A DNA stretch of 63,503 nt, filler included, from Guillardia theta CCMP2712 (taxonomy: Eukaryota; Protista; Cryptophyta): the NCBI RefSeq assembly GCF_000315625.1. It is 5 parts of 5 records of this genome, joined end to end, with 100 filler letters (N's around TTAATTAATTAA, not from the genome) between each part and the next. Parts side by side here need not be neighbours in the genome. Positions count along the whole stretch, not along the records: positions 19,960 to 36,700 come from NW_005434612.1; positions 36,801 to 57,183 come from NW_005434353.1; 3 more parts are not named here. One strand, 5' to 3'. Positions 15,487-57,316 of the stretch are shown here, one piece after another. Each line of letters begins with the position of its first letter. The first letter of the stretch is position 1. Under the pieces are notes generated by a model. That model was given only the letters and a program-made list of their open reading frames with translations, ran no database searches and was not told where the DNA came from. The position numbers were made by a program, and so were the translations under genes.

Positions 15487-15747
15487 CTTTCCAAGACTTT
15501 GGCCGGCACACTATATACTTTCTTTAAACTCTGAAGGTTTTCTGTCATTTTTATTGTTCACCACATAATTGGACCACCCCCGGGGGCGAAGGGGGGTTCG
15601 ATGACCTTTCAACCTCACAAGTCCGCCTCAGAGTGAAAAACACTTGAACAATTTCGTTTGAGAGTCTTGCTGCATCCTTCAACTCTCATCTTCTTCAACA
15701 AGATTATATTGCAGTGCTATGAATCTTTTTCTTTATTACATGGATGA

Positions 15748-16506: not shown

Positions 16507-16907
16507 CGAAGGAGCTTACATCCGAGTTGTCATCAAGTTGCGTTGAAGTTATTATGAGGCTCAGAGAGGTCAGTGAGTAAGAACGTGATGTGTGCGATCA
16601 CAATCAATGTAACATCACATCGAACGGCTGAAGTTGAACTTCATCTCTCTTGCAACCCAGTGACAACAGTAATGACTATGATAGCCCCTCCGCACAGTCA
16701 CTACAGTGTGATGCAGCAGTTGGAGAGAAACAAGCAAGGAAAGCAGAGGAAACAAGGATACAAAAAAAGAAGAAGAGGGGAGTTCACAAGGAAAAGCAAC
16801 CCAAGTAAGAAAAAACAAAAAAACATAAGTCATGACAATCATTCCAAATGATTAAGAAATTTCATCAAAACGATATGATGTTAGCTACAAACGCTTCCCC
16901 CAACTTC

Positions 16908-36629: not shown

Positions 36630-36952
36630 GGGAAGGAGGGAGGGAGGGAGGGAGGGAGGGGAGGGAGGGAGGGAGGGAGGGAGGGAGGGAGGGAGGGAGG
36701 NNNNNNNNNNNNNNNNNNNNNNNNNNNNNNNNNNNNNNNNNNNNTTAATTAATTAANNNNNNNNNNNNNNNNNNNNNNNNNNNNNNNNNNNNNNNNNNNN
36801 TCCTTCCCCCCCAGTCGCCGCTTGTCTTCCCTCCATGACCATGAGCTGCGCCTGCCTCCTTGATGCTAGGCTTGTTTTCCTTCCCTGCCGCCTGTGCTCC
36901 ATAGGTGGCTTGCCCCTGTGCCGCGCCTGCCCCCTCACCTGCCCCCATCGGA

Positions 36953-39319
36953 CTAGGTCGACTCGCTTCCCCTTCTTGCCGTCCATAGCATGTGTTGCAC
37001 CTCCAGCAGTTGCTTGATTGCTGCTGTCTTGATGCTTTCCCATTCCGTGTCATCCACCCTTAGCCTCCTGAAATTCTCATGCCATTCCCTCTCCATGATC
37101 GATCCTTTCACTCCTGCTATGAATGTTGCTTGTTCAACTTCATGGTCAGGGAGCAGAGCTATGATTTCTGCTCGTAGATCGGCATATTTCTCTTCTTTTT
37201 CCTGAAATTTCTTCTTCAGGCATTCCAGGCTTGTGTGTTCGACTCCGTCATATTCCGATGTCCTTGCGAATTCAATGATGACGATGCGTTTGATGTTTGT
37301 AAAGTAGCAGCAACCGTCTGGTATCCATTGTCCTTCTTGGTGCATTGAAGTCCCCATCGCTTCCATCACGATGCGCATTGGAGTTTCCCACCATGTAGTG
37401 ACCTGTAGCCTTTGTTTCCTCCAACTCTGCTGCAGTCTTACCTTGATCTTCTTCATGACTTGATTGTGTGCTTGTTGGATCATTGCTTGAAACTGCCGAC
37501 ATGCCAGCTGAATATGCCCCCAGGTTTCTTCTCGGTCTGGACAGTGGGGGCAGCATGGTGAGTTAGTCTTCCCCCATTGAAAGAGCTTCTTCCTCGTCGG
37601 TACTGAGAAGGTGATTGCTTGAATTGCTGTTCGTGTGAATGAACCTTGGCATACTCTAAACGCCTTCGCGAGTAGGTTTCTGCCCACATGTACTTCAAGC
37701 ATGAATTTCTCCGTCAAGGTGAGGTCTCCCGCTCGAATCCTCGCAGTCATTGCCTGTTGTCGAATTATATAGTCCCACTTCTTCAATCTATCCATTCCTG
37801 ATGTAGGACTGTCTTCTCCTGCGATGGTGAACTCCATTGCGCTGTCATAAATCGCTTTCTCCCATCCCGAGGCAAATGTTTGTTTTGCTTGTTTGGCCAT
37901 CTCCTTTGCCTGTTGGATGTGTCGGTCAGATTCTTTTGCTAATTGAAGTCGGATCTTGATTCCTCTCCCCTCGAGTTTCTTCATGCAAGTGAGTAATCGA
38001 TCATGTAGGTCCTCCAGCAGTTCATCTTCGTATCGCATGGTATCAATGCGTAATGTATTCGTGATGAAGCGGTGAAAGCGGGTGGACTGATACATGATTG
38101 TGACTTGATTTCCCCTCTTGATTTGTATCCCTTCCTCGAGGATATGTTGGAACAGTAAGCCAATTGCAATTGTATTCGCTCGAATGATGCTGCATTTCCC
38201 ATTGATTTTCATCCCTCCTCCTGCTGCCGTCGCTTGTTGCTGGAGAACATACCCTATTCGCATGGTTCTATTTTTTCTGCTCTGTGTGACGTCTCCTTCA
38301 ATAGCTGCTGTGAAATGCCTTCCGCCTTGGTGATCGCTGCGCGGCTGGATCTGACCCCTTCGTTGGTTACACATCTCCTCATACGTTGGGAGGATGTTGT
38401 CATGAAGCTGAGCTCTGGGGTATGTTGGGAATGTGTGCTTGACGAGTATCCATAGCTCCTCTAACGTTTTCATCAGGCAACGATTCCCTGTTCCCCAAAA
38501 GTTTGCTGCGTATGCTATCTGAGCGCCTTTCGGGATCCGGCTGATAATTTCGAAGCCTTCTGGTATCTCATCAATGTTATTCTTCCATCCTATCAGAATG
38601 ACATGTATTGTGTTTTGCAGGATGTGCTCGCGAAATCTCTGTTGTTTATCTATCCAAACCACCACTCGTTGCAGTTCCTTTGCTCTCTTGTTGCTCAGAG
38701 CCTGGGGATGTGTGTGTAGTGTCGGCCAGTTACGAAATGTACTGATGTCACAATCTGTGATCTCTGCTAGGTGTTGTAAAAACTCGTATGCCAATGGTTG
38801 TGTTGTTTCTTGGCGAACCTCTGATACTACCTCTTCGAGTTGTTGCCACCATGCTGTAGCTTCTGTTTCGCCGTCGTCCAACATATTGACTATTTCCAGC
38901 AACAGATGGATACTTTGATTGCATTCTCTTCGGTGATTCCCGTCTTCTTCTTCCTTTGTTGCAGATGTGAAGGGAGCCGAGTCCAGCGACGCTTCCACCC
39001 ATTCTATTGGTGGGTCCGAGGTTGTGTTTACTCCTGTGTGGGGCGGCTCAAAGATAGCGATGTCTCCATGAACTTTGAAAGGTATGCGCCCTGAAGTGTA
39101 GCAAAATCTTTCTCGCTGATTCTTGTCGTCTCCATAGTAAGTAGCGTCATGTTGGAGGAGCTCCCTCAAAATCTCCCGGGTATGAGCCCTCCTATTTGTT
39201 TCCTCTCTCCCTTGGTCCGGTCTGGCTAGTTTCGTGGGTGGCAGGAGCTCGTGTGGGCTAGCCTCCCTTTTTCCTTTCCTTCTCTTAACCTTCTTTGCAG
39301 TGAACGGCTGTACATTGAA
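36953..39319 (-). CDS. Element A ORF2 C-terminal part: degenerate RNase H-like, CCHC zinc knuckle, restriction-like endonuclease
   Basis: The frame of ORF 36953..39169 stays open up to the inversion junction. RNase H-like IEGD..RIG..RANTIAI..IMYQS..AKEMAKQA (acidic residues lost); CPHC-x7-H-x4-C; AHNQV; PDG...IIEFARTS...KEEKYADL...AGVKGSI. Confidence 0.85.
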   Translation of the reverse strand, partial: FNVQPFTAKKVKRRKGKREASPHELLPPTKLARPDQGREETNRRAHTREILRELLQHDATYYGDDKNQRERFCYTSGRIPFKVHGDIAIFEPPHTGVNTTSDPPIEWVEASLDSAPFTSATKEEEDGNHRRECNQSIHLLLEIVNMLDDGETEATAWWQQLEEVVSEVRQETTQPLAYEFLQHLAEITDCDISTFRNWPTLHTHPQALSNKRAKELQRVVVWIDKQQRFREHILQNTIHVILIGWKNNIDEIPEGFEIISRIPKGAQIAYAANFWGTGNRCLMKTLEELWILVKHTFPTYPRAQLHDNILPTYEEMCNQRRGQIQPRSDHQGGRHFTAAIEGDVTQSRKNRTMRIGYVLQQQATAAGGGMKINGKCSIIRANTIAIGLLFQHILEEGIQIKRGNQVTIMYQSTRFHRFITNTLRIDTMRYEDELLEDLHDRLLTCMKKLEGRGIKIRLQLAKESDRHIQQAKEMAKQAKQTFASGWEKAIYDSAMEFTIAGEDSPTSGMDRLKKWDYIIRQQAMTARIRAGDLTLTEKFMLEVHVGRNLLAKAFRVCQGSFTRTAIQAITFSVPTRKKLFQWGKTNSPCCPHCPDREETWGHIQLACRQFQAMIQQAHNQVMKKIKVRLQQSWRKQRLQVTTWWETPMRIVMEAMGTSMHQEGQWIPDGCCYFTNIKRIVIIEFARTSEYDGVEHTSLECLKKKFQEKEEKYADLRAEIIALLPDHEVEQATFIAGVKGSIMEREWHENFRRLRVDDTEWESIKTAAIKQLLEVQHMLWTARRGSEST

Positions 39320-39402
39320 CGGAACATGCGCACGGGCTGAATGTCAAACAAAGGGAAGAATGATTCCGCTGTACGACAAACGTCAGGAAAACAAAGAACC
39401 AA
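39320..39402. repeat. 83-bp inverted repeat, partner at 41181-41263
   Basis: Both encode GTCARAECQTKGRMIPLYD(K/R)RQENKEP on opposite strands; one mismatch seen. Confidence 0.95.
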
Positions 39403-41180
39403 AGATCCTCTTCTTCTGCAAAAGCTGTCAATTATTCACTTCCATCAAACCACCGGACTTCGACCCCCCAGATCAAATCAATCAATATCAGACCAGGGAG
39501 ATAGAAATAGCATACCCGCTGGAGCCAGGAGAGATTCAGGTCTGGATCCAAAGACTATCCAACCGCAAGGCAGCAGGCATGGATTTGATCTCAAATGAGA
39601 TCCTGAAAGCTCTACCTGATAGCGCAAAGGAGGAGATAGGGGAAGTAATCAGCAAAGCTTTGACAGGAGACAAAAAGATGTTGAATATGCTGGCAAGGGT
39701 CAGGCTCTTACCAAAAAATGAGCTCTGTCACGTCCTGGAGAACCAACGACCTATATGCGTCCTCTCCTCGGTGACGCGGATCTTCCAGGCGGTCATAGCG
39801 CACAGACTCGCGAAAGCAGCTGAAAAACATAAGCTGCTGACGAACAACCAGGAAGGTTTCAGACCAGAGGGAGGGACGATCCGGCAGGGCCATCGTCTAC
39901 TCAACATCATCGAGGAGGCTCAGAGCAATCAACACACCCTCATCCTGTTATACCTTGACTTTGCAAACTTTTTTAACAACGTGGCAGTCGAATCCATCGC
40001 AAAAATCATGGAAGTATATGGCTTCCATCAGCGTGATGTAGACGTGGTAATCAGCGGCAGCAAAGGGATAGCACTGCAGATTCAAACAGAGAGGTTCGAA
40101 ACGGCAGCCATCCCGCTTCTCAGGGGATTACCTCAAGGCAGTCCTGCAAGTCCTCCCAAAACAAATCTACTGCTTAGCATCCTGTCCAGACAACTCGATC
40201 AACAACAAGACGAGATTGCAACTCAGCATCCCAACAACCTGTCATTCGCAGATGACCTTGTACTGATAGCCAACTCAGTGAGGGAAATGAAAACACTAGT
40301 TCAAGTGGTAGAGCGATTCTGTAGATGGAGTGGATTAGAACTGAACACGAAGAAATCTGAAATCACCAGCTTTGATTATCGGCTCAAGAGGGAGATCCCG
40401 GGGACGCAAAACATCAAGTTCTTCGACAAGGAGTTTGTGAACCTACCACCGACGAAATGGTTCAAATATCTAGGGATTCGAATCAGCTTGTGGCGATCAG
40501 GAGGAAGAGGCAACAAGGCGCACACCTGCCCCTTCACGTGGGGAGAGAAGGAGCATATCTTCGAAAAGACCAGGGAACTGACAAACCTGATTGAATCATC
40601 GGCCTACTCTGCAGCCCAGAAATACTACCTAGTCAAAGTAGGTATCGTGAATATCTTTCGATACTCGGCGGTACTCGTTAGCTGGACGTGGAAAGATTTA
40701 CAAACCTTGGATAACCTCTGGACCAGAGCGTTCAAACGAGCTATGGGATTGAGTAAGAGCACAAGCAATGCGATTTTTCGCCTACCTTGGGACAGTGGAG
40801 GCCTCCAACTCCCCCATCCAGCACCCATCTTGGGAAGGGCGGCGATTCGGTATCTAGAGAAAGAAACGAATAAGAAATGCAGGGTGGATGATGATATCAA
40901 AAGCAGTTTGATACACAAACTAACATCATGGTGCAACCAATGGGGGTGCCAAACAATAAGCCAAGTACAACGAGAAATCAGATCGGGCAGACGGGGCCCA
41001 GAACGACTCGCAATATGGGTAGCGGAGAAAATGCAGACAACTATCAGCTGGGAAATGATTGAAAGCAAGAAGAACAATCCCTGCGTACATCTCCTGCTCG
41101 GCAAGGCTGGGAGAGCTTTGCTAAGGCATGGAGAAAATTACCCCAAGTAGGCTATTACTACCTAACAAGTATCTTACCTG
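39320..41180 (+). CDS. Element A reverse transcriptase domain (inverted segment)
   Basis: KAAGMDLI, LLPK..NQRPICVLS, NQEGFR, LYLDFANFFNNV, RGLPQGSPASP, LSFADDLVL, GLELNTKKS, FKYLGI, GGLQLP: non-LTR RT motifs in order. Confidence 0.95.
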
Positions 41181-44100
41181 TTGGTTCTTTGTTTTCCTGA
41201 CGTCTGTCGTACAGCGGAATCATTCTTCCCTTTGTTTGACATTCAGCCCGTGCGCATGTTCCGCACGATATCTGCAAGTGAACGTCATCTGGGCAAAACT
41301 CGGTCAAGAGCAGGCAGGAACAGGGAAGCAATCTCATGGGGAGGAATTGCTCGATGTTTTTGTATCCTACTAAGCGCCACCCTCCTGGCTGCCCCCGGGT
41401 GATCAGTCCTCGGATGATGGGTACGATTGCGTGTGCAGGCGCCAGAGTTATGTACATCTTTTGTGGTGCCTGGTTTCTCGCCCCGAGAGTCTCGACGTGT
41501 AGCATGGTTTGATGTCTTGCATTCCAAAAGGTTTTGCTTGATTCTTTGGAGCTGCTTTGTAAGAATGTTTCGATTAACGGGTTCAGTTCTTGAAGATATG
41601 CTGTCTCCGGCTGTTGCAGCGCTGGCTGGAGATCCCTCCATGACGTAAGTTCGATTGTATTTGGGTGGCACTTCTCTGACAGTTGACTCAGCATTGGGGC
41701 TTTGGGCTTAAAGTCTGACTTCTTGCCCATTGCGTTTTGAGACTCTTTACTCCCTATCGTCCCCAAGCGTCTTCTTCGTTCGTCGCATGTTTTCAGAAAT
41801 ATCTCTTGGTCCTGTGCTGCGCAGATCTCTTTGAATTTGGTCATTGTCTCTCTTATTTCTGCGTGTAAGCTTGACTCCTTGTGTGCCCGATCAATAAAGT
41901 CGGGAATTTCTGATGCGCTTCTCAGATCCCTTTGAAGCTGCTTGAGTTTCCGTTTCAGATCCATCTGAATCTTAGATGCATGTCGTTTACCGCCTGAGCC
42001 TCGTAGGGGGATTTCCTTGGTGGGGAGGGCTGTTGTTATCAGTTCGAGAATGTCCAAGTCTTGGTGTAGGGCTTTTGCCGCTGTTATCTTCTCATCCAGT
42101 GCTATTGCCCATTCTACACCTAATCTTCCTGATAACTTGTCCATCTCGACCACCCTTTTCTTTCGTCGAGGAATTGCTTCTCGATCTCTCCTTTGCGGGA
42201 GAATTTCAATCTTTGGGATGGCTTGCTCCCCCTCAGCATCGAGCGAGCTCACATTCACTACGAGTGCTCTGTGGTCGACGGCAGCTCCTATGATGCAGTC
42301 TTCTGCGGTCTGCGATATCAGGCTTACTGTGCGAGATGGATGATGGAAAGCAAAGATATGATCCAGTTTCGCTTGGTGGTGACCCTGCTTGTACCATGTG
42401 GAGAAGGTGAAGTGTGTGCTGCTTCTGCACATCTTCTCGCAGGTGACTGTCTGGACTCGCCCAAGCTCATTTAAGACTTGCTCCATTTTCTCATCTGCAC
42501 GGTGTACACTCGAATTGCTTCCGTATCCTATTCTCATGGGGATCTCTGGATGTTGTCGAGATGCATTGAAGTCGCCTCCGATGATGATGAGCTTGATGTT
42601 TGGGTCTGGCTTGAGCATCTGGCTTAGCGCCTTCCACATGCTGTCTTGTTCCCCCTCCTCCGTCGCCACTGGCATATGGATGTTACACAAAAGTATGTTT
42701 TCTTTTTTTCGTGAGATCTGTAAAACTTGTATTTTTTGTCTGTGTGCCCCCTCCAATGCTGTACCATTTGGCGAGGAGGGGGGGCGCGGGAGAAGGTCAG
42801 CATGCGCCAGTATCACAAGGCGTAGATCACTCTTACCCTTTCTCCCAAACCCTGTACCCTTGGTCATAAACATTCGGTAACATCCCCATTCTTTCTTGAT
42901 CATCATTCGGAGATCTGTTTCCTTTTTCTTACCACGCCCCACCCTGACTTCCTGCAACATGACAATAGATGGATGATACTTCTCAATCAAATATGCCAGG
43001 ATGTGTTTCAGCACGAATTGACTGCATCCATTGATATTTTGAGAGATGATGTTGCCTGGAGCGTTGTCCTTCTTGTGGGTTTCCACCCATGCTGAGTGCA
43101 CTGACCTATCGGTGGTAGCCTCGTGTGCGTTGCTGCTTGCTGTTAGGATTTGCTCCTCCGCCTCCGATGCCCATTGAAAGTGGGACGCGTACCTCTCTTG
43201 CATCTTCGTTGGGGCTGATGGCTCCTCCTCCCCCCTAGTCTCCTTGTCGTGCTTCGAGTTTGTCTCTGCGTGCATGTCTGGTGGGGGGGAAGGTGGCTGG
43301 AGTGGAGAGACGGGGCATGGGGCGGGAGGTGGTGGAGGGGGGTATGGCAGGATGTCCCCCTGTGCTGACCTGTCTGGTATTTGCAGGGCCGCTCCGTCTT
43401 TCCATCTCTCCTCTAGCCATGCATCTTCGGCTACCTGGGTCATCTGAAGCTCGCCTGCGCGTTTTTGGCCATTCTCTCGCCTTTCCATCTGGTTAGGTCT
43501 ACGTTCCATGGTGAGCTTTGCTGCTTGCCATTCCTTGTAGCCTGTTTCTTGCGCGTGTTGTAACGCTCTGCAGATGCATTGGATCGTTTCTCGCATGTGA
43601 ACTTGTTCTAGACCCCCTCCCCAGAGCCCATCCAGCAGCAGGTGCCTTGTTCTCACGAGCCATTGTTGGTGTGGCGGGACGCCTTGTTGCCTACCTATGT
43701 TGAAGATATCGTGTTGTTGCGTCTGCTTTCGTGTCTTTGCGATCAGCAGCAGATGCAGTAGTACAAAAATTCCGCAGTTGTAGCCGTCCGTTTGTTGCAG
43801 TCCCGTTGACACACATGCCCTCCATGCCTTGTCGTCTTGTTCTTGTTGGTCGCTAATTGCCTCGGTGATGATCGTCGCCACGAGTGATGCTAGGTCCATT
43901 CGCTGTGCGCCCCCCAATTGAAACTGTGCATCCCTTTGACTTCTGACTGTCCCCAGGTCTCTCTCCCCGGCCGTGTTGAGCGAGTCGACGATGTGTATTC
44001 TTTTTGTGTTGACATCTGCCACGATTAGGATCCAATGATTGCCGTTTTCTACGCATGGGAATAATAATGGTTGAGCTGCTCCGGCTAACAGTCGCTTTGC

Positions 44101-44529
44101 TCTCCTTGCCCTTCCCTCCTGATCTCTCAAACCCGCTACTATTCTCGGGAGAACAATGGTCCCTCTCTGCAGCCCAAATTGGTTTCTAGTTTGCTCGCTG
44201 GCATACCTCGTGCCTTGGAGCCATGCTATTTGAAATCTGTCTTCCGCTGGTTCTAAATTTCGGTTTACCTCAACGATTAAAGCCTCCATAACGTCCTCAG
44301 AGAGAAATCCATCTTCTCCTGAGTTGAGCAGCGCCGCTGCTCCGTACTCTCTATTGTTTTCCCGTAGACTCCAGGGGATCTCCCCTATCAAGTCGAATGT
44401 TTGTATTTTTCTGTTTTTTGGATTCTTTTTGTCATTCTTTTTCTCACCTTCTTGTCTCTTTCTGCTTGATTCCACCACGCCCTGGTGCCCACTGTCCCAC
44501 CTGCCCTCTCCTCCTCCTCCTGCTTCCAT
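41181..44529 (-). CDS. Element A ORF2 N-terminal part: Ulp1/C48 cysteine protease plus APE endonuclease
   Basis: Protease LLFP...NHWILIV...IVDSL...QQTDGYNCGIFVL (about 43740-44330); APE IISQNING, IVMLQE, NIHMP, GGDFN, KLDHIF, VDHRAL (about 42260-43055). Confidence 0.9.
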
Positions 44530-46682
44530 TAGGCGTCAAGCGGCGCGGTTGGGGAGGAGTCAAGCGACATCTCTTCCACTTCTACCGCTCTGCTCCCTGC
44601 TTCGGGTGCATCTTCCACTCGCGCGTCTTCCATCTGTATCTCACTGCTCAAAACAAGTTTCAATTCGTTTCTGTCTCCCAGCATTCCTACGAGGGAGAGC
44701 GCCGTTTCCTCCAGGAATTTATTCAAAGCAATGAAGAGAAGGTCAGTTTTCAAGGGCTTCTCCTCATTTGGTGCGAAAGCGCTGCTCTTGCGTTTCGCTA
44801 CCTTCCACGTATGCTTGCCTGCAATCACCCTGACTCGTTCACGCAGTCGCTTGCTCACGGCATTCTCTGCCGCGTTGGCACCCTTATCAGCCCACTCTTG
44901 TAGCGTGGGGAAGGATGCATTTCCTGGGCTCTCCGGAGCCATCTCTTGCACCGCGTCATCAAGATGGAGTTGAAGCTGCCCTTGCTGTTGCAGCTCGCTC
45001 CTAGTTACGTCAGCAATAGTTTCCTTAAGTTCTTCGACGACCACGTCCGTTCCCGCATCTGGGAAGTTGGTTTCATTGATAATGGAACTGAGCTCGATCT
45101 CTTTCCACACAGTTCCCTCTGCTCTGGTCCCCGTCGTTTGTGACCTGGCCTCAGGGTTAGACTGATCGCGAGTTGCCTGAGGCGACACTTTGAGGTTCAG
45201 ACTGCTCGCTGTCGTTTGGATTTCAACTGTGCCTTGCCAGCAGAGGAGCTGTGTGGGGAATTCAGCCATCATCTTTCTTGCACTACTTTCACTGCGTAGC
45301 CGGAGAATGATACCAGACCCATCCCAGATCCCTGTTTCTGGATCGCATTGGAGGTGGATCCGTTGGAGATCTTTTTCCACCTGTGGATCAAAGCAAGCGA
45401 CAGCCCTCCGAATGTTTCGGATGACTTTTGCTCTGCCCGTTTCGTCACTTGCGCAGATTTTTTCGATCTCATTTCGGGAGAACTTCCCTGACGGCACAGG
45501 AGAGGAGATTTGTACCGAGTACAGCATCTCTGCTCCCGTTGCCATTGCCGTGCCCTCTTGTCGCACCGCATTCTTCATATTCTTGTGCAGCGCCGTTGCT
45601 TCCATCTGCACTGAGAACCATTTCAGTATTTTGTCATTCTCTGAGACCAGTCCCAAAGTGACTCCTGCACGATCCTTTCCATGTCGATCGAATGCTTGAA
45701 GAACGATGTCCGCTGCTTCAAGGCTCGAGCACGTTGCGATCCAGTCGACCTCTCTGTTCTGGTTGACTGTTTCTATTCCTACCGCAGCGAACACCTTCTT
45801 TGGCGGTAGGTTCCTCTTGGGGGGGAGGTTCACTGTCATTCCCGCGTTTGGGATCAGATCAATGATCGCTAATCCCTGCTTCAGGCATAGCTGCCTGTAG
45901 ATCTCACATATGTCACCTGTGCTCGAATCGTTGAGCATCAGGAGTTGGGCCACCTCAGCTAGGATTCCAACTCTGCTCATGTTCTCCTTCTTTGGCCGCA
46001 TCTTGAACGAGATCGGTGGGTTGGCTGCTGGGTTCACTGCTAGAATCCTCCTGCCTGCCACCTTGAAGGTACCCTCTCCTTTCCAGAGTTTCTCAGCCGC
46101 CTCATTGCGGACAAATGTGATCACTGCTGGGATCTCCGCTGCCTGCACAAGGTCAGGCTTCAAGGGAGCCTTGAAGATCAGGCTCCTGCTATCTTGCGTC
46201 TGATCGACGATCAAGCCTTGCTCTTCAAGCTTGAGGCATAAGTTTTCCACCTGTCTGGAAAAGTATGCAGGGATCCCAAGTACCTTCATGGTAATCGTCT
46301 GCACATTGGTGCCCTGATCATCATATGATCTGGCCTCCATCTGCCTTTGTCTGTCAGCTTGGAACTCTGACAGGTACCACTGCTTGACATCGTCACCCCA
46401 CTGCCTGAACCCTTTCGGATTCTCCAGTGACGAGGGTTCAGCAAAGCTGCATGTCTGACTGATGGCTTCGGCTAAGGCTTCCAAGGAAATTTCTTTTGCT
46501 TTCAGAGCTTTGCTCGTCCTGCTTTTGGGGTTCTGCCTTGCGAATTCATCCAGTCTCCGCATCAGTTCGGCTGATGACGGCATCGTTGCAGCTTCCGTCT
46601 GCCTCTTGAGGTAGCTGGAGGTACGGTACTGCACGATCTCGTCAGGGTTCACAATAGATATTGGCCACATGTTTCGAAGCAT
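44529..46682 (-). CDS. Element A ORF1 (717 aa, gag-position protein)
   Basis: Intact ORF whose TAA overlaps the ORF2 ATG. Homologous to the B and C ORFs (FKAPLKPD..EIPAVITFVRNEAAEKLW, SAFAP, LLFIALNKF). Confidence 0.85.
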   Translation of the reverse strand: MLRNMWPISIVNPDEIVQYRTSSYLKRQTEAATMPSSAELMRRLDEFARQNPKSRTSKALKAKEISLEALAEAISQTCSFAEPSSLENPKGFRQWGDDVKQWYLSEFQADRQRQMEARSYDDQGTNVQTITMKVLGIPAYFSRQVENLCLKLEEQGLIVDQTQDSRSLIFKAPLKPDLVQAAEIPAVITFVRNEAAEKLWKGEGTFKVAGRRILAVNPAANPPISFKMRPKKENMSRVGILAEVAQLLMLNDSSTGDICEIYRQLCLKQGLAIIDLIPNAGMTVNLPPKRNLPPKKVFAAVGIETVNQNREVDWIATCSSLEAADIVLQAFDRHGKDRAGVTLGLVSENDKILKWFSVQMEATALHKNMKNAVRQEGTAMATGAEMLYSVQISSPVPSGKFSRNEIEKICASDETGRAKVIRNIRRAVACFDPQVEKDLQRIHLQCDPETGIWDGSGIILRLRSESSARKMMAEFPTQLLCWQGTVEIQTTASSLNLKVSPQATRDQSNPEARSQTTGTRAEGTVWKEIELSSIINETNFPDAGTDVVVEELKETIADVTRSELQQQGQLQLHLDDAVQEMAPESPGNASFPTLQEWADKGANAAENAVSKRLRERVRVIAGKHTWKVAKRKSSAFAPNEEKPLKTDLLFIALNKFLEETALSLVGMLGDRNELKLVLSSEIQMEDARVEDAPEAGSRAVEVEEMSLDSSPTAPLDA

Positions 46683-46777
46683 TCTCGATGGTTTCCCGAG
46701 CTTCCTGCGTTCCTGGCGACTCTTGCTCTACCACGCAGGGACCCCGCTGATCTGCATGCCTCAGATAAAGGGATCCT

Positions 46778-47103
46778 CCTAAACCCTAAACCCTATTATT
46801 ATTATTATTATGTGAGTTTATTAGAATGCTAGAATGTTGCTCGGGGATCCTGCCTCAGATAAAGGGATCCTCCTAAACCCTAAACCCTAAACCCTAAACC
46901 CTAAACCCTAATAGCTAAGAACTTTTGCTCTTTGCTCATCTCTCGCCTAATGATATGTCTAAAGGGGTTAATGTTGCTCGGCCTCGTTGTGGGCTTGTGC
47001 AATTTGATCCTAGTCTAAAGAGGCGCTCGAGCACTGGGAGTACACTCCTCAGATAAAGGGATCCTGCCTCAGATAAAGGGATCCTCCTAAACCCTAAACC
47101 CTA
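46778..47103 (-). repeat. Three TTTAGGG tracts (46778-46795, 46872-46911, 47086-47103) separated by two miniature retro-insertions
   Basis: CCCTAAA runs alternate with the 20-bp TCAGATAAAGGGATCCTGCC unit and copies of the element B 3' end. Confidence 0.9.
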
Positions 47104-49882
47104 TTATTATTATTATTATGTGAGTTTATTAGAATGCTAGAATGTTGCTCGGCCTCGTTGTGGGCTTATGCAATTTGATCCTAGTCTAAAGAGGCGCTCG
47201 AGCACTGGGAGTACACGGCCTACAATGCGAACCCTGCTTCTGAGGCGTCTTTCTACTCTCTACTTCTGCTGTCTTCTCTTGGCTTCCTCAGCCTCAGTCA
47301 GGAGAGTTGCCTCTCCTCACCTTGGCCTTCGGTCACCACCTACTCTACCTCCATTCAGCTTCCTCAGCCTCAGTCAGAAGAGTTGCCTCTCCTCACCTTG
47401 GCCTTCGGTCGCCACCTACTCGTCCTCCATTCAGCTTCCTCAGCTTCAGTCAGGAGAGTTGCCTCTCCTCACCTTGGCCTTCAGTCGCCTCCTACCTTCT
47501 CTCCTTACCTTGGGCTCAGCTCAAGCTCGGTACGGGCTCGCCCCGTCTTCTTCCTCGCCCTCGCCTTGCTCTTCCTCCATGTCTTCCTCTTCTTCGTCAT
47601 CTTCCCTCATCTCCACCCGCAGTCGGTCCTTCTTGTCCACCTTCAGCGAGCAGGCCAGCACATGCATCTCTGCGAATTTACTCAGTGCTATGAACAGGAA
47701 GCTAAGAGATCGACGCTCTATGTCGTCGCTCTCCGCCTCCTGCTCAAGCTCAGCAGCTGCCGTTGCCCGTGGCGAGAACGCGCTGCCCCTCCTTGCCTTC
47801 TTGCTCTCTCCTTGCACGCGAGTCCAGCGCTTGCTCTGCAGCCACTTCCCCAGCTTCTCCTTGAGAACGTTGCGCCCAACTCCCTGCTCCTCTGGCATCT
47901 TCGCCCACTCTCCCAGCGACATGAACTCCAGGCTCCCCGGAGAGTAGAACGTGTCGTGGAGGTTGCCAACGGCCTTGTCCAGGACCAGCTTGATCGGCTC
48001 GCTCGTCCCCGCCTCGTTCAAAGAAGCTGCATCTTCGATGACTGCTGACAGCTCGCTGACGAGCTGCATGTCCTCTTGGCTTGACGGAGATGCTGCCTCC
48101 ATTGTGATCCTCTCCAGGTCTGTAAACTCCAGCCACTCTCCCTCGCTTTCCTCCTGTCGCTGCGCTGCGTCGCTGGTGCCCCGCTGACCAGCCGCCTCAG
48201 AGTCAGGCTCCTTGTCGAAGCCGACTGCTTCGAGCTTGGTTGCTGCGCCTTCGAGATAGAAGGGCAGCTCCTTCATCATGCGTCGAGCATCCTCCGTGGA
48301 GCCGAGGAGGATGCATAGCTTGGACCCGTTCCAGGACTTGGTGTTCAAATCCTCCTCCATGTCGATGCCTTCAACGTTGATCTCGAGCCTGTTAGCGATC
48401 TCCAACAAGACTCTCTTGACTCTTGCGATAGACGTGTTGCCGCCGTTGCACAGCCCCTCCATCTCCTTCCTCGTGAAGCGACCAGATGCCGCCGTCGACT
48501 TGATGATGATCTTGATCTCCTTGCCGTCCTTGCCGCCTGCCTTCTTCTGCATCCTTGATGCCTTCTTCAACTTATTTCTGGACACAAAGCGATCAGCTGT
48601 CAACTCGACTGCGAGCGCCTCTCTGATCTTCGGGTCCTCGCTGAACAGAGTCAGGTGTACTCCCTCCATCGCTTCGCTCTCTCGGAAAGCTCGAAATGCT
48701 GTATCATTCGCCTCTGGGCAGCTCGAGGAGACGATCCACTCCACCTCCCTCTGTCTCCAGATGACGTTGGCCCCTACAGCGATGAAGCCTTTCTGACCTA
48801 AGCCTTTGTGGACTTGCTGTCCTGGCGCCCCAGCGACCAGCATGCCTGCCAGCGGCTGGAGTTGGACCGCTGCAAGGGACTGGCGCAGCAGCTGATAGCG
48901 ATAGACGGCAGCTATCTCAGCCGTTGTCATGCCGCCCAAGGTTAGCAGGTGAGTCAGCTCTGCCAAGCTGCCCCCTTTGCCCCAGGGTCCTCTCTTGGCT
49001 CGAATCTTGAAAGATCGATCGTGCACGATGCTCACATGTACAGCTGTGAACTTGCGACCATCGATCGCGAAGTCCTCTCTTCCCTGCCAGAGCTTCTCCG
49101 CTTGTGCATTGCGGAGGAAGGAAACAGTCACCGGGATCTCCTCAGCACTCGCTATCTCGGGTCTATACGGAGCCTTCCACATGATCGCTTTACTCTCTTG
49201 CACTGAGTCTACGATCAGTCCGATCTCTTCAAATTTCTTCTTCAGCTTTTCTTCATGGTTGACATACACCGAGGAGATGCCCAGGAGAGTCATGGAGATG
49301 AAGGAAGTCACCTCGTTGCCTGCTGAGGCGGTGTATGTCTCGACCTTCTCCTTCTTGGCTTCTTCAATCTGCTGCATAAACCACTCTCTGGATGCGTCAC
49401 TCCATCCAGCCATCGCTTCTTGCAGAAGCTCACGTCGTGCCTGCTGACATGTCGAGCGGATGGCTTCTGCGATAGCGTCGGGGGTGCATCCCTCCACAGC
49501 CTTGCAAGCCTGGGCTGTCCTGCTGTTCGGATAACGCTTCGCGAAGCTCTTCACCCTCTCGACGAGATCAGCTTCGAGGACAGAGGCATCCACAAGTCCG
49601 CTCTGCGTGTATTGGCATGATCTCCGATACAGCAGGTTGCGAACATTTTCATCATACTGAAGAACCATACTTAGAAAGCTATTTGAAGTATACAAACCTC
49701 TTGCTTGCAGCTTCCTTGGCGCCCTGGCGGCTTCCCCTACACCTGACGAGGAGCCATGCTGCCGAAAACAACGGCGCCTCCATGCTGCCGAAAATAACGG
49801 CGCCTCCATGCTGCCGAAAATAACGGCGCCTCCATGCTGCCGAAAATAACGGCGCCTCATGCTGCCGAAAATAACGGCGCCT
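47104..49882 (-). mobile_element. Element B: ORF1-only non-autonomous telomeric-repeat retroelement
   Basis: Five 26-bp repeats at the 5' end (49754-49882), ORF1, 3' UTR with 76-bp repeats, AATAAA, (TAA)n tail, and TTTAGGG tracts on both sides. Confidence 0.85.
47521..49668 (-). CDS. Element B ORF1 (715 aa from MVLQY)
   Basis: Start placed by homology to the element C ORF (MVLQYDE.VRNLLYRRSCQYTQ). The longer track ORF only reads through the 5' repeats. Confidence 0.85.
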   Translation of the reverse strand: MVLQYDENVRNLLYRRSCQYTQSGLVDASVLEADLVERVKSFAKRYPNSRTAQACKAVEGCTPDAIAEAIRSTCQQARRELLQEAMAGWSDASREWFMQQIEEAKKEKVETYTASAGNEVTSFISMTLLGISSVYVNHEEKLKKKFEEIGLIVDSVQESKAIMWKAPYRPEIASAEEIPVTVSFLRNAQAEKLWQGREDFAIDGRKFTAVHVSIVHDRSFKIRAKRGPWGKGGSLAELTHLLTLGGMTTAEIAAVYRYQLLRQSLAAVQLQPLAGMLVAGAPGQQVHKGLGQKGFIAVGANVIWRQREVEWIVSSSCPEANDTAFRAFRESEAMEGVHLTLFSEDPKIREALAVELTADRFVSRNKLKKASRMQKKAGGKDGKEIKIIIKSTAASGRFTRKEMEGLCNGGNTSIARVKRVLLEIANRLEINVEGIDMEEDLNTKSWNGSKLCILLGSTEDARRMMKELPFYLEGAATKLEAVGFDKEPDSEAAGQRGTSDAAQRQEESEGEWLEFTDLERITMEAASPSSQEDMQLVSELSAVIEDAASLNEAGTSEPIKLVLDKAVGNLHDTFYSPGSLEFMSLGEWAKMPEEQGVGRNVLKEKLGKWLQSKRWTRVQGESKKARRGSAFSPRATAAAELEQEAESDDIERRSLSFLFIALSKFAEMHVLACSLKVDKKDRLRVEMREDDEEEEDMEEEQGEGEEEDGASPYRA

Positions 49883-49921
49883 CCTAAACCCTAAACCCTA
49901 AACCCTAAACCCTAAACCCTA
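49883..49921 (-). repeat. Telomeric tract, about 5.5 copies of TTTAGGG
   Basis: CCTAAACCCTAAA... between the 5' end of B and the 3' tail of C. Confidence 0.95.
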
Positions 49922-50511
49922 GTAGTAGTAGTAGTTGAGTTTATTAGAATGCTAGGTAGGTTGCATGGCTTGTTATCACCTTGCTCTACTCTAGTCTAAC
50001 AGGGATCTCGTGACCTGGCAGTTCGGCCCGACTTGGCTGGCCCTTATGGCAGCCGTGCTTCTGCTCTGCTCCCTCCTCTGATATACTTGAGTGGTCTTCC
50101 CCGGCCTCAGCCAGTGGAGTTTCCTCCGCCGGCCTTGGCCTGGGTCGTCCGTGCTTTCAACTTGTGTTGCTTCCTCGGCTCCGACACACCTTGGCGGTCT
50201 CGGCCGGCCTTCGGCCAGTGAGTGAATGAGGGATAAGGACAATCAGGAGATAAGGTGGTAGGTGGAATGCGTATGGGTCCCTGGGACTCACGTCCCTTCC
50301 CCCGGGCCTCGGTCCGGACCGGGCCCGAGAGCCCGGCCGGCCTCCGCCCGGCCTCCTCCTCCCGGCCCCCCTCCCCCCTCCCCCACCGGCTTACCTGCCC
50401 TTACCTTCGTTGCTTGCCCCATGTCCACCTGCTTTATTTCTTCCTCCTTCCCCCCATGGGGCCCACAGCTCCGCTCCGCCTCTTGTCCACCTCTAAGACT
50501 TGACTCGAGCC

Positions 50512-52662
50512 TCAAGCGCGCGAGGGGCCTGCACCGGCCTCCTCCTCCACGCCCTCGCCCTCCTCAGCCTCCATGTCGACTTCCTCCCTCATCATCAGCC
50601 GCAGTCGGTCTTGCTTGTCGACCTTGCCCGTGCAGCTCAACCCATGGTGCTCAGCAAATTTACTGATCGCAAGAAACAAGAGGCTAACAGATCGACTCTC
50701 GATGTCATCGCTCTCAGCCTCCTGCTCGAGCGCATCAGTCGCTGCTGCCCTTGGAGAGAAGGCGCTGCCCCTCCTCGCTGCCTTGTTCCCTTGCACCCGT
50801 GTCCAGCGCTGCTCGCCGAGGTACGCTCTGAGCTTTTCTTTCATCATGTTTCGCTTCGATCCCAGCGTCGGCGTGGCTGCCCAAGCTCCGAGCGTCATGA
50901 ACTCCACGTTGCCCGGCGAGCAGAAGGTGTCATGCAGCTTCCCAACACTCTTGTCTAGCTCCAGCGAGATCGGCTTGCCAGCTAGCAGCTCCTCCTCTGA
51001 TGTCTCCAAGAGCATCGTCGAGAGGTCGAGCAAGACCTGTTGGTCGACTGGCCCTGACGGTGACGCTGCTTCCATAGTAATCCTGTCGATGTCGCTGAGC
51101 TCCAGCCATCCAGCGCCTTGCTGCTGCCCTTGGGGCTCTTGGGCTTGCTCCTCGCTGCTCGGGCTCCTCTCCTCCTCATGCTGAGGGTTGAGCTTAAAGC
51201 CCATAGCTTCCAGCTTGACTTCCAGGATCCCTTCCAAGTAGAAGGGCATGTCTTCCATCAAGCGTCGAGCCTCTGCCTTGGTCGCCAGGGAGAGAGCTAT
51301 CAGGCTCCCATCCCAGCTGAGCGTGTCACGATCCTCCTCGACCTCGACGCTGACCAGCTTGAGGTTCATTCTTCTTGCTAACTCCAACATGGCTCGCTTG
51401 ACTCTCGTGATCGATGTGTTACCTCCTCCGCACAGCGCTTCCATCTCCTTCCTCGAGAAGCGGCCTGTGCTCATGCTTGACCTCGACTTGATCTGTACTC
51501 TGAAGCTGCTGCGCCCCGCATGATCTCTCTCGCGAAGTGCCTTCCTCTGCTTGGCAATCTTTCCCCTCGGCACGAAGGTGTCGGCTGTGAGCTCGACTGC
51601 AAACGTCTCTCTGAGCTTGGCGTCGTCGCTGATGAGAGTGAGATGCACCCCCTCCATCGCCTCGCTCTCTCTGAACGAGGCCAAGGTCTGCTCGCAACTT
51701 GCCGTCGAAGGCGAGCTGAGCACCCACTCCAGCTCTTTTTGCTGGAGAGTGCCCGTACTTGCCCCAACAGCGACATACGTCTTCGGGCTCGGCCCCTTGC
51801 GACCTCTCTGCCCAGGACCTTGCACGAGCATGCCTGCAAGCGGTTGTACCTCTGCGGCTGCAAGAGATTGCGAGAGCAGCTGAAATCGATAAATCTGAGC
51901 GATCTCAGCCGTCGACATTCCTCCGAGAGCTAAGAGCTGCGATAGCTCGGCAAGGCTCCCTCCCTTGCCCCAAGGTCCTCGCTTGGCTCGAAGCTTGAAC
52001 GACCGGTCGTGTGCAATGCTCACCTCTGTGGCTCGGAAGGCTCTCCCTTCTATGCAGTATTCTCTCCTGCCTTCCCATAGCTCCATGGCTGCTTCATTCC
52101 GAAGGAAGGAGACGGTGACTGAGATGTCGTCTGCTCGTGCTATCTCAGGTCTGTAAGGTGCTTTCCACATGATGGCCTTGTCGACTCCATCGACTGAGTC
52201 TACCATGAGACCTAGCTCCATAAGCTTCGATTTCAACTTTTCTTCTTGTCGAACAAACATCGAGGAAATCCCTAGGAGAGTCATGGAGATGAAGGAGGTC
52301 CCCTCGGTGCCTTCGGTGCCGATGTATGTCTCGACATTCTGCTTCTTGGCCTCCTCCATCTGTTGAATAAACCATGCTCTCGACTCTGAGCTCCATTCAC
52401 TCAGAGAGTCTTCAAACAGGTCGCGTCTCGCCTGCCGACATGTCGAGCGGATGGCTTCAGCGATAGCGTCGGGAGTGCATCCCCCCTCAGCTCTGCAAGC
52501 CTGAGCTGTCCTACTACCAGGATACCGCTTCGCGAAGTTCTTCACCCTCTCGACGAGGTCGGCGGCCTCCTCGGCGTGGCCTCCAGAGCGCTCGCCCTGC
52601 GTGTATTGGCATGATCTCCGATACAGCAGGTTGCGAACGCTCTCATCATACTGTAGTACCAT
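50512..52662 (-). CDS. Element C ORF1 (716 aa)
   Basis: Intact and collinear with the B ORF over its whole length (AKRGPWGKGGSLAEL, FRESEAMEGVHLTL, RRGSAFSPRA), more distantly with A. Confidence 0.88.
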   Translation of the reverse strand: MVLQYDESVRNLLYRRSCQYTQGERSGGHAEEAADLVERVKNFAKRYPGSRTAQACRAEGGCTPDAIAEAIRSTCRQARRDLFEDSLSEWSSESRAWFIQQMEEAKKQNVETYIGTEGTEGTSFISMTLLGISSMFVRQEEKLKSKLMELGLMVDSVDGVDKAIMWKAPYRPEIARADDISVTVSFLRNEAAMELWEGRREYCIEGRAFRATEVSIAHDRSFKLRAKRGPWGKGGSLAELSQLLALGGMSTAEIAQIYRFQLLSQSLAAAEVQPLAGMLVQGPGQRGRKGPSPKTYVAVGASTGTLQQKELEWVLSSPSTASCEQTLASFRESEAMEGVHLTLISDDAKLRETFAVELTADTFVPRGKIAKQRKALRERDHAGRSSFRVQIKSRSSMSTGRFSRKEMEALCGGGNTSITRVKRAMLELARRMNLKLVSVEVEEDRDTLSWDGSLIALSLATKAEARRLMEDMPFYLEGILEVKLEAMGFKLNPQHEEERSPSSEEQAQEPQGQQQGAGWLELSDIDRITMEAASPSGPVDQQVLLDLSTMLLETSEEELLAGKPISLELDKSVGKLHDTFCSPGNVEFMTLGAWAATPTLGSKRNMMKEKLRAYLGEQRWTRVQGNKAARRGSAFSPRAAATDALEQEAESDDIESRSVSLLFLAISKFAEHHGLSCTGKVDKQDRLRLMMREEVDMEAEEGEGVEEEAGAGPSRA

Positions 52663-52750
52663 GCTTAGAAGCTGTTTGAACTATACCAAGAACTTGCTCG
52701 CAGCTTCCTCCGGTCCCCTTGCGCTCTCCCTACGCGCCGCGGATGTGCAT

Positions 52751-53190
52751 GCCTCGGGAAGGGGCGGCCTTGCCTCGGGAAGGGGCGGCCTTGCCTCGGG
52801 AAGGGGCGGCCTTGCCTCGGGAAGGGGCGGCCTTGCCTCGGGAAGGGGCGGCCTTGCCTCGGGAAGGGGCGGCCTTGCCTCGGGAAGGGGCGGCCTTGCC
52901 TCGGGAAGGGGCGGCCTTGCCTCGGGAAGGGGCGGCCTTGCCTCGGGAAGGGGCGGCCTTGCCTCGGGAAGGGGCGGCCTTGCCTCGGGAAGGGGCGGCC
53001 TTGCCTCGGGAAGGGGCGGCCTTGCCTCGGGAAGGGGCGGCCTTGCCTCGGGAAGGGGCGGCCTTGCCTCGGGAAGGGGCGGCCTTGCCTCGGGAAGGGG
53101 CGGCCTTGCCTCGGGAAGGGGCGGCCTTGCCTCGGGAAGGGGCGGCCTTGCCTCGGGAAGGGGCGGCCCTTGCCTCGGGAAGGGGCGGCC
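52751..53190. repeat. 21-bp tandem array (GCCTCGGGAAGGGGCGGCCTT), about 21 copies
   Basis: Near-perfect units; one has an extra C. Confidence 0.97.
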
Positions 53191-53213
53191 CTAAACCCTA
53201 AACCCTAAACCCT
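53189..53213 (-). repeat. Telomeric tract, about 3.5 copies of TTTAGGG
   Basis: CCCTAAACCCTAAACCCTAAACCCT. Confidence 0.95.
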
Positions 53214-53230
53214 TCATCGTGTACGACCGG

Positions 53231-53915
53231 CCGCCGGTCGTACACGATGAACTCCCTGTGCTTGTCCAGACACGCCTGCGGGTGAGTGTCTTGCGTTACT
53301 CCGATCACTGAGTCATGCAGCCGGCTGCTGCCCGGCATGGCTGGTGGTCGTCGAGCTCTCCTCATGGTTTGCAGGGCCTCGTACGGCGTTCCTAGCGCCA
53401 CAGGCTCGCACGAGCAGCATGCGGCAGATCCCGCGGCTGTCGGGCGTGCAGTACTCGTCGCTCTTGCTGGAGTTCTCCGCTAGGTAGACCCCAGCTCCGA
53501 ACAAGCCTTCTAGGCTGCAGACCCGCTCGTCGAGCCCGGACTTCAAGATAGCTTCCGCCATGTCGTGCTTGGTCCCGTGGAACAGAAACACCTCGTTGCT
53601 CGTCTTGTCCTGTAGCAACGAGCTCTTCATCCAGTCTCTCCAGGTGCTGACCTTGGTCTTAGGGTGTCGATTCCCCTGCTGCAACATGAGCTGACCTATA
53701 GATCTTCGCTCTAGAGCATACGCCGACCACAGCCCCGCATGCTCTACACGGAAGACTCGCTCCACCTCGTATCCTTTATACTTGAGGCCCTTGTTGTCTC
53801 TTCCTTGCGCTGCTGGGGTAACACTCTGACTTTTTTTTAAGATGCTTTCGCTGCGCTTTTCTCTGAAAGAGTCCAAAAAGGCATTTTTCCAGTCTGCCAG
53901 CCCTCCATTGGATGC
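53231..53915 (-). pseudogene. PARP catalytic domain (tankyrase/PARP12-like), frameshifted near 53400 and 3'-truncated
   Basis: NEVFLFHGT, GLFGAGVYLAENSSKSDEY, RMLLVR, then in another frame VALG...HDSVIG...REFIVYD (H-Y-E triad). The final strand is missing. Confidence 0.85.
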
Positions 53916-54030
53916 TTCCAGTGTCTCTCGTACCTCTCCATATCCCCTTGGATGCTTCCAGTGTCTCTCGTACCTCTCCATATCCCCTTGTATGCCACCA
54001 GTGCCTCTCGTACCTCTCCATATCCCCTTG
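53910..54030. repeat. 39-bp tandem repeat, three copies, possibly intronic
   Basis: CCAGTG(T/C)CTCTCGTACCTCTCCATATCCCCTTG units. Confidence 0.85.
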
Positions 54031-56831: not shown

Positions 56832-56915
56832 GATCGGTGAGCAAGCTCACTTGTAGATCGGTGAGCAAGCTCACTTGTGGATCGGTGAGCAAGCTCACTT
56901 GTGGATCGGTGAGCA
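56832..56915. repeat. 24-bp tandem repeat, about 3.5 copies, each with a GTGAGC-AA-GCTCAC hairpin
   Basis: GATCGGTGAGCAAGCTCACTTGT(A/G) units. Confidence 0.9.
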
Positions 56916-57316
56916 AGATAAGACTGCACAACCTCTTCAAATGCCTTGAAACGGATGTTCCACCCTCGCGACAGCAATCTCTGGTTACAAGATCTTTACG
57001 GTTCAAGTATCATCTTTTAGATATCAAAAGCCGGCGGGCAAGCTTGTCTCTCCTTGTTCAAGTTCCTCTCTTATCTTCTCCTCTATCACAACTTCCTCCC
57101 CTACATCACCCCCTACTCTGACGCTCTCGCATGACCCCCCACCCCTCCTTGTCCGTACCCACCCCTCTCTTCCCCTCGCGTCTNNNNNNNNNNNNNNNNN
57201 NNNNNNNNNNNNNNNNNNNNNNNNNNNTTAATTAATTAANNNNNNNNNNNNNNNNNNNNNNNNNNNNNNNNNNNNNNNNNNNNGAAAAACCCGGTCAGAG
57301 CCGTAAATATAACCGC

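Follow-up and report, generated by a model that had tools for sequence, protein, structure and literature searches.

Telomeres of the cryptophyte Guillardia theta CCMP2712 very probably harbour head-to-tail arrays of long interspersed nuclear elements (LINEs), each inserted by target-primed reverse transcription (TPRT) at one fixed position of the TTTAGGG repeat. This was recognised in a window of 63,503 nucleotides (the whole stretch of DNA that was analysed, composed of five genomic parts joined by filler), in which positions 36801-57183 are one whole contig of 20,383 bp. This contig carries three kinds of elements: A, with a pair of open reading frames (ORFs), the second of which (ORF2) codes for a reverse transcriptase (RT) plus two endonucleases, and B and C, which have ORF1 only. 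The array was compared with fetched loci (labelled L001-L014, of which L003, L004, L005 and L014 are metagenome contigs), where a further autonomous family, E, was found.

The features of the array are read on the minus strand. Their order, 5′ to 3′ on this strand, is: a PARP-like gene fragment, a palindrome, telomere tract T1, element C, T2, element B, T3, fragment F1, T4, fragment F2, T5 and element A. T1 ((TTTAGGG)~3.6; 53189..53213) joins the cut-off PARP-like gene to C, T2 ((TTTAGGG)5.6; 49883..49921) lies between C and B, T3 ((TTTAGGG)2.6; 47086..47103) between B and F1, T4 ((TTTAGGG)5.7; 46872..46918) between F1 and F2, and T5 ((TTTAGGG)2.6; 46778..46795) between F2 and A. A 14-mer of the telomere repeat, with at most one mismatch allowed, had 13 matches versus 0 expected. 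A preliminary description of this DNA had reported three co-oriented elements with homologous ORF1s of ~716 aa and five short TTTAGGG tracts at their junctions; all five tracts were located in the sequence and the ORF1s proved to be of 717 (A), 715 (B) and 716 aa (C). That account did not include the two small elements, F1 and F2, that separate B from A, the division of A's ORF2 into three pieces, or the loss of A's 3′ end at the contig border.

The junctions between elements and telomere repeats are precise. In the 14 loci compared (the window contig and 13 fetched ones), 27 3′ ends could be recognised, and each of them borders on telomere repeats. The form (NTA)n|GGGTTTAGGG is exact in 22; in the other five the tail deviates slightly or the adjoining repeat is degenerate. 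At the 3′ junction, TCTAATAAA(C/A)TC(A/G)N is succeeded by (ATA)n or (CTA)n and this by GGGTTTAGGG; the 5′ junction is placed at TTTAG or TTTAGG, plus 0-2 additional bases. The sense strand of the elements is the G-rich strand, with the 5′ end directed gene-ward and the 3′ end towards the chromosome end. Elements of the metagenome contigs have like junctions on both sides, and two of these contigs end in 12-16 repeats. Lengths are variable: tracts comprise 2-18 repeats, tails 2-13 units and 5′ blocks 1-21 units. One fixed phase of the telomere repeat combined with a precise 3′ junction, the features by which telomeric-repeat-specific LINEs are recognised, is thus found in these elements.

In every family the telomere repeat is followed immediately by tandem units of 20-26 bp, in which a GGNNCC-type palindrome (GGATCC, GGCGCC or GGCC/GGGCCC) comes first and ..AGGCA last (46777-46758, 49884-49754, 53190-52750, L001 12584-12760 and L006 1-90). 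These units may be promoter monomers or may result from reiterative copying at the RNA 5′ end.

Elements B and C show the ORF1-only layout. Element C (49920..53190) opens with a 21-bp unit repeated 21 times (5′ block, 53190-52750) and continues with ORF1 of 716 aa (52662-50512), a 3′ untranslated region (UTR) with AATAAACTCAA (50511-49936) and a (CTA)5 tail (49935-49920). Element B (47102..49884) begins with five copies of a 26-bp unit (49884-49754), and its ORF1 (49668-47521) encodes 715 aa when counted from the conserved MVLQYDE start; the longest ORF is of 779 aa, the extra part being an upstream extension through the 5′ repeats. The 3′ UTR of B contains 2.9 copies of a 76-bp repeat (47504-47282) and AATAAACTCAC, and is followed by an (ATA)6 tail (47119-47102). 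In both elements a 3′ UTR of 400-580 nt leads to AATAAACTCA, (ATA)6 or (CTA)5, and GGGTTTAGGG; the end of the UTR can be read as TCTAATAAACTCA plus one base before the tail, with GGGTTTAGGG directly after. No ORF2 homology was found in C, and B likewise has no ORF2, in agreement with the earlier statement that only A of the three carries ORF2, and the described succession of an intact ORF1, a 3′ UTR, AATAAA and a simple-repeat tail was confirmed for both. The ORF1s of B and C share 61% identity, whereas that of A is 32-33% identical to either.

Neither B nor C is confined to the window. ORF1 searches retrieved 43 G. theta CCMP2712 "hypothetical proteins" with 95-99% identity, spread over dozens of scaffolds (one of them, the gene model P0054, matches ORF1 over its first ~106 residues only). 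For annotation purposes, ORF1 of type A, B or C is the best match of these "hypothetical proteins". Other loci contain at least 12 copies of B and at least five of C, all with the ORF1-only layout (those of C in L007, L008, L009, L001 and L013), and in the sampled loci B and C are commoner than autonomous copies. The boundary between ORF1 and the 3′ UTR is identical in every full copy of B and C, which points to one founding event followed by amplification. The ORFs are intact in the four B and three C copies examined, and the ratio of nonsynonymous to synonymous substitution rates (dN/dS) of ORF1 ranges from 0.07 to 0.17 within family B and from 0.18 to 0.37 within C, and is 0.27 for B against C. 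A metagenome scan with B ORF1 returned one locus, L014, in which the end of a B-type ORF1 is followed by a 356-nt 3′ UTR of 84% identity, an (ATA)6 tail and then telomere repeats. Compared with B over 311 codons, the ORF1 of L014 shows a dN/dS of 0.21 and a dS of 0.15.

Judging by these copy numbers and ratios, B and C are real multi-copy ORF1-only families under purifying selection and not one-off deletions. The preliminary description had proposed non-autonomous members that keep their own ORF1, and had named neutral ORF1 evolution in one-off deletion copies as an outcome that would speak against this; dN/dS values far below 1 favour the proposal. Both families lack an RT-encoding ORF, keep an intact and selected ORF1 and have been amplified, and these are the hallmarks of gag-only partners. 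There are also indirect signs of transcription. Runs guessed to be RNA contained 66-78% of the sampled words of B compared with 0-4% of those of the unique flank, and a 461-aa protein (P0047) that is 99.8% identical to G. theta B ORF1 occurs in a transcriptome-derived EukProt set labelled Heterocapsa arctica. Its presence in a dinoflagellate set is most likely due to cross-contamination with G. theta RNA.

Element A is the only one of the three with an ORF2. Its 5′ part (44529..46777) contains one 20-bp 5′ unit (starting with GGATCC), a 5′ UTR and ORF1 (46682-44529; 717 aa), whose stop codon overlaps the start of ORF2 in the sequence TAATG. ORF2 lies in three pieces. The N-terminal piece (41329..44529) encodes an Ulp1/C48 protease domain (aa 155-272) and an apurinic/apyrimidinic endonuclease (APE) domain (aa 496-733). 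The middle one (39287..41328; aa ~1081-1785), with the RT domain (RVT_1, 4.6e-29; FADD motif), is on the plus strand, i.e. inverted. The C-terminal piece (36953..39286; aa ~1807-2575; stop codon 36955-36953) encodes a linker, a CCHC zinc knuckle and a restriction-like endonuclease (RLE) with the motif PD..E..R..K. Of the 3′ UTR, the first 152 nt (36801..36952) are present before the contig end cuts it off, and full A 3′ ends are present in L001, L004 and L005. In the window copy, Pfam assigned C48 and APE to a minus-strand ORF of 1,123 aa and a zf-RVT zinc motif to the last ORF of that strand, while RT was matched on the plus strand, in the ORF at 39186-41147.

Compared with colinear copies (L002, L001 and the metagenome contigs), the inverted RT block measures 2,042 bp, and 32 and 39 nt of L002 are absent from window A at the two breakpoints. 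As assembled, this copy would be unable to make the ORF2 protein, having been inactivated by the inversion. The three pieces are still open and show dN/dS values of 0.26, 0.10 and 0.18 against an intact relative (dS ~0.6), which indicates that the inversion is recent. In addition, the block carries an 83-nt patch (41181..41263, plus strand) in place of the native ~85 nt; this patch reproduces 39320-39402, from the opposite end of the block, in inverted form and at 99% identity. The idea that this inverted repeat forms the native arms of an invertible RT cassette was rejected, since the colinear L002 has no such repeat, and so was twin priming as the source of the inversion, as the layout direct, inverted, direct does not fit it.

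Intact A-type elements occur in the metagenome contigs L003, L004 and L005, where ORF1 (713-719 aa) overlaps ORF2 (2,575 aa) by one base. They have TTTAGGG repeats on both sides and B-type ends as neighbours. Pfam domains of the intact ORF2 are C48 (156-270), APE (497-728), RT (1219-1476) and CCHC (2355-2395). The Exo_endo_phos match is above the cut-off in the window (9.7e-06) and weaker in the intact L004 (0.0061), and the APE motifs N, E, D-N and D-H are in place when the domain is aligned to the L1 endonuclease. For the last 276 aa, an exhaustive HMMER scan supplied 23 relatives, and C-x2-C..E..H..C and PD..E..R..K..Y are conserved in the alignment of these 24 sequences. The AlphaFold2 (AF2) model of the C-terminal region reached a predicted local distance difference test (pLDDT) value of 94, and the top seven matches of its fold search against PDB were R2 C-terminal linker/zinc-knuckle/RLE regions (TMq 0.56-0.67; E-values down to 9.5e-09), followed by PD-(D/E)xK cap-snatching nucleases; a phmmer search of PDB with the C-terminal 326 aa gave no match. 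The RT is likewise closer to R2 (2.4e-22) than to L1 ORF2p (2.8e-13) among PDB entries. A region-limited homologue search returned two proteins only. The nearest long relatives combine SET, C48, APE, RT, RNase H and RLE in various ways. From these motifs and the predicted fold, the A ORF2 is assigned to the Dualen type, with an APE and an R2-like RLE in one putative protein, as the preliminary description had proposed.

Its further suggestion, that A is the one master element, is not borne out in that form. Not only is the window copy inverted, but there is a second autonomous family, E, with an ORF2 45% identical to that of A. The E copy in L007 is 5′-deleted, with an open frame of 1,224 aa and the 3′ end ..CATTCTAATAAAATCGA(CTA)n. 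The 3′ ends of all families share CCYTTTAGAC and the terminal TCTAATAAA motif, and in their alignment C comes nearest to E, B takes a middle position and A stands furthest apart, so that the 3′ ends of C, and partly of B, are E-like.

Families are also joined to one another. In L011 (9426-11831), ORF1 of C (aa 1-414) is fused to the end of the E ORF2 and the E tail; in L001 (7333-9884), ORF1 of A is fused to the end of C ORF1 with the C tail; and in L013 (16705-18499) an A-like ORF2 has an E-type 3′ end. In the window, both small elements join A-type 5′ units to pieces of 3′ UTR. F1 (46919..47085), compared with the A 3′ end in L001 and with the B 3′ UTR, consists of two A-type 5′ units, a B-type 3′ UTR piece and an A-type 3′ UTR piece that stops short of its end, with telomere repeats directly after. 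In the mini-element F2 (46794..46871), an A-type 5′ unit and part of another are fused to the terminal ~45 nt of a 3′ UTR of B type and an (ATA)6 tail. Internally deleted copies that retain the first ~10-28 nt of the 5′ unit were also observed (e.g. L009 12729-12760). The chimeras and internal deletions suggest that templates are often switched, jumps to the 5′ ends of RNAs among them. Chimeras between families imply shared machinery, with their RNAs meeting one RT, and the sequences point to a modular pool rather than to one master with dependants.

Besides A, B, C and E this community has further families, noted in L001 (reverse strand, ~14150-13325), L009 (18205-19510), L012 (19814-20482), P0012 and P0013. 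One such element has 5′ units TGAGCTAGCAA(A/T)TGG and an ORF2-like segment, and some ORF1 types are only 42-47% identical to that of A. A consensus fold of the 3′ UTR ends gave a weak hairpin of eight pairs only (-0.99 kcal/mol), and no structure is claimed.

All ten G. theta loci fetched lie within 45 kb of the ends of their scaffolds (41 kb-1.19 Mb in length), which are not proven chromosome termini, and in eight of the ten the elements point outwards. Each fetched locus is a head-to-tail array with TTTAGGG tracts bounding each element, and the arrays begin directly after ordinary genes (kinesin, RCC1, TIP49 and, in the window, PARP). The claims that copies are flanked by telomere repeats and that these LINEs lie at scaffold (probably chromosome) ends hold throughout this sample. 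Several 3′-truncated elements run directly into telomere repeats (e.g. L001 12550, L010 6660 and window 46919), and most of the new tracts on them start with (A)GGGTTT. A truncated element followed directly by telomere repeats indicates erosion at a real chromosome end and subsequent healing by telomerase. As a separate observation, eight of ~12 junctions on non-telomeric sequence read A|GGGTTTA; junctions of this type are at L007 6874, L008 5780/6630, L009 9697/19583, L010 6660, L002 7288 and window 53213, and they hint at the alignment register of the cryptophyte telomerase.

Since sense runs along the G-rich strand and the 3′ ends are distal, the 3′ end of the chromosome itself could not serve as primer for the cDNA. 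In the mechanism that we propose, which is like that of SART1 in orientation and logic, an element endonuclease would nick the C-rich strand at 5′-CCC^TAAA-3′, and the 3′-OH thus released would prime cDNA synthesis on the RNA tail. The G-rich strand would be cut 2 nt away (TTTAGG^G), leaving a duplication of GG on both sides. The ORF2 proteins of A or E may copy the RNAs of B and C in trans through the shared 3′ end, with the ORF1 protein of B and C presumably needed in cis, as with HeT-A. Telomerase would heal eroded distal elements and supply new target repeats, allowing the arrays to grow outwards.

Several points weigh against this reading. No direct sign of current retrotransposition was seen, and mobilisation in trans and the assignment of endonucleases to strands are inferred. 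No intact autonomous copy was found in the G. theta loci examined (A is inverted in the window and decayed in L002, and the autonomous copies in L009 and L007 are 5′-deleted), the intact ones coming from metagenomes of a related organism. ORF1 has no Pfam family and no Atlas match, and its AF2 model is poor (pLDDT 51.6; 16 sequences). No RNase H was matched in the intact 2,575-aa ORF2 at E-values up to 1, and when A is aligned by BLASTP with RNase H-bearing relatives, C48, APE, RT and RLE align and the RNase H segment does not; the domain may have been lost or be too diverged to detect, and it is not regarded as essential to the definition of a dual-endonuclease element. The ten G. theta loci were reached via ORF1 gene models, so that copies outside telomere repeats may have escaped. 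Scaffold ends are not proven chromosome ends, and L001 and L013 contain convergent arrays 12-35 kb inside scaffolds. In these arrays the 3′ ends face each other (L001 ~13323 and 14157-14198; L013 ~12700-16700), and they may be scaffold mis-joins of telomeric contigs or old end-to-end fusions.

The arrays might instead be passive subtelomeric duplications of a few old insertions near interstitial telomere-like repeats, spread between chromosome ends by recombination, in which case the uniform TTTAGGG junctions would stem from one ancestral block and not from targeted insertion. Subtelomeres often exchange sequence, and a segment with B and its downstream junction (window 49772-47047) is indeed 99% identical to L001 4527-7256. 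However, the order, type and number of elements differ at every locus, the lengths of tracts and tails and the numbers of 5′ units vary, and one junction phase is shared by four families (A, B, C and E), by 5′-deleted copies and by chimeras. Like junctions recur in a different organism or population (dS 0.15-0.6), and dN/dS values far below 1 argue for replication through functional RNA lineages; we therefore consider duplication a very unlikely origin of the arrays. Still more improbable, to the point of being hardly credible, is that the elements have replaced telomere maintenance, or have been co-opted for it, in the Drosophila manner by end-priming. The terminal head-to-tail arrays with gag-only members superficially resemble HeT-A/TART/TAHRE, but TTTAGGG tracts stand between all elements, the two metagenome contigs terminate in such repeats, and the new telomere repeats on truncated elements show telomerase to be active. 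In orientation the elements are opposite to those in Drosophila, with distal 3′ ends, which end-priming cannot produce, and the catalytic motifs are kept in both endonuclease domains.

A different question is whether the ORF1 of B and C has any role in mobilisation, or whether these elements are 3′-processed or ORF2-deleted dead copies that build up only through the tolerance of telomeric DNA for junk. Among the fetched loci, no full-length element pairing a B- or C-type ORF1 with ORF2 was found, the 3′ UTR of C is nearest to that of the autonomous family E, and the L011 chimera suggests that C descends from an E-type element of full length that lost its ORF2. Dead copies would nevertheless not be expected to share an identical boundary between ORF1 and the 3′ UTR, to keep intact ORFs (four B and three C copies) with dN/dS of 0.07-0.37, to retain the B layout and a selected ORF1 in a metagenome relative, or to outnumber autonomous copies in the sampled loci, and we regard this explanation as unlikely. 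Insertion of functional elements by TPRT can be extended to the idea that they are more than parasites, providing end protection or length buffering beside telomerase, with the two endonucleases dividing the strand cuts and B and C acting as obligate suppliers of ORF1 or as targeting factors, comparable to HeT-A Gag for TART, in G. theta and probably in other cryptophytes. This is rather doubtful and is offered as speculation.

The last ordinary gene before the array in the window is a fragment encoding a PARP catalytic domain (53313..54098, minus strand; PF00644, 1.7e-16). At its broken end, directly before T1, lies a perfect palindrome of 18 nt with a 3-nt spacer (53213..53251, minus strand), an inverted duplication of the last codons of the gene itself, which looks like a fold-back at a chromosome break later healed by telomerase. 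The unique flank contains tandem repeats at 53908-54030 (40 bp x3.1, inside the PARP-like ORF region) and 56831-56917 (24 bp x3.6). An Rfam scan of 36801-46870 gave no match. In L012 (15625-15942), a fragment of a piggyBac-like DDE_Tnp_1_7 gene interrupts a C element inside the telomeric array.

Telomere-specialised retrotransposons are textbook examples in insects (HeT-A/TART/TAHRE and TRAS/SART) and are known from a few fungi. SART1 and TRAS1 of Bombyx mori resemble the elements described here in using one fixed repeat position, with a precise 3′ and a ragged 5′ junction, and in having telomere repeats between copies while telomerase repeats persist. As here, the sense strand of SART1 is the G-rich strand. 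The stop codon of its ORF1 and the start codon of its ORF2 reportedly overlap as UAAUG, which the TAATG of element A resembles. Unlike the G. theta elements, SART/TRAS are R1-clade members with an APE only and a poly(A) end; they insert into TTAGG/CCTAA in insects and are not known to have gag-only partner families such as B and C. On the G. theta side there are C48, APE, RT, CCHC and RLE, (ATA)n/(CTA)n tails, a TTTAGGG target and a cryptophyte host. The Drosophila elements share with those of G. theta the terminal head-to-tail arrays in which RT-encoding elements accompany an abundant and conserved gag-only one (HeT-A). They differ in the lack of telomerase repeats, end-priming, proximal 3′ ends, affiliation to the Jockey clade and the presence of an APE or no endonuclease.

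MoTeR1 and MoTeR2 of Magnaporthe oryzae (cited in PMC4640811; PMC7367193) are similar in their RLE-type enzyme, telomere-repeat target, head-to-tail arrangement between repeats and pairing of an autonomous element with a non-autonomous one sharing its termini. They are CRE-like, with RLE only and neither APE nor ORF1, in a fungus with TTAGGG repeats, and MoTeR2, unlike B and C, has no gag-like ORF homologous to that of its master. With regard to the enzyme, the cryptophyte Dualen elements (Dualen-1_GCr, Dualen-5_CCu; Lescot et al. 2016) unite C48, APE, RT, CCHC and RLE in one polyprotein (PMC5029228). Their reconstruction from transcriptomes gave undivided giant ORFs (5,287 aa) that also include SET and RNase H, and no target site, ORF1 or non-autonomous partners were reported for them (PMC5029228); an RNase H between RT and RLE is reported for Dualen (PMC4640811, PMC5029228). 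Element A differs from them in its separate 717-aa ORF1, the lack of SET and of a detectable RNase H, and its specificity for telomere repeats, while its nearest relatives P0067, P0091 and P0069 share the published Dualen architecture. The novelty suggested in the preliminary description is hence partial: the dual-endonuclease architecture was already published (PMC5029228), whereas full-text literature searches, Repbase not being covered, turned up no description of Dualen elements that target telomeres, of ORF1-only partners or of cryptophyte retrotransposons at telomeres.

The arrays of G. theta provide a well-developed example of telomere LINEs in another supergroup (Cryptista) and in an early-branching LINE lineage. 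A site-specific Dualen with a repeated 7-bp target offers a clean substrate for dissecting the role of each endonuclease in TPRT, and the junction data give the phase of telomerase healing in a cryptophyte. The ORF1-only families indicate that gag-only partners, as a strategy, have more than one evolutionary origin. The nearest kin of this system are SART/TRAS in behaviour, HeT-A with TART/TAHRE and MoTeR1/2 in the composition of the community, and the cryptophyte Dualen in the enzyme, and it arose independently of the telomere transposons of flies and silkworms.

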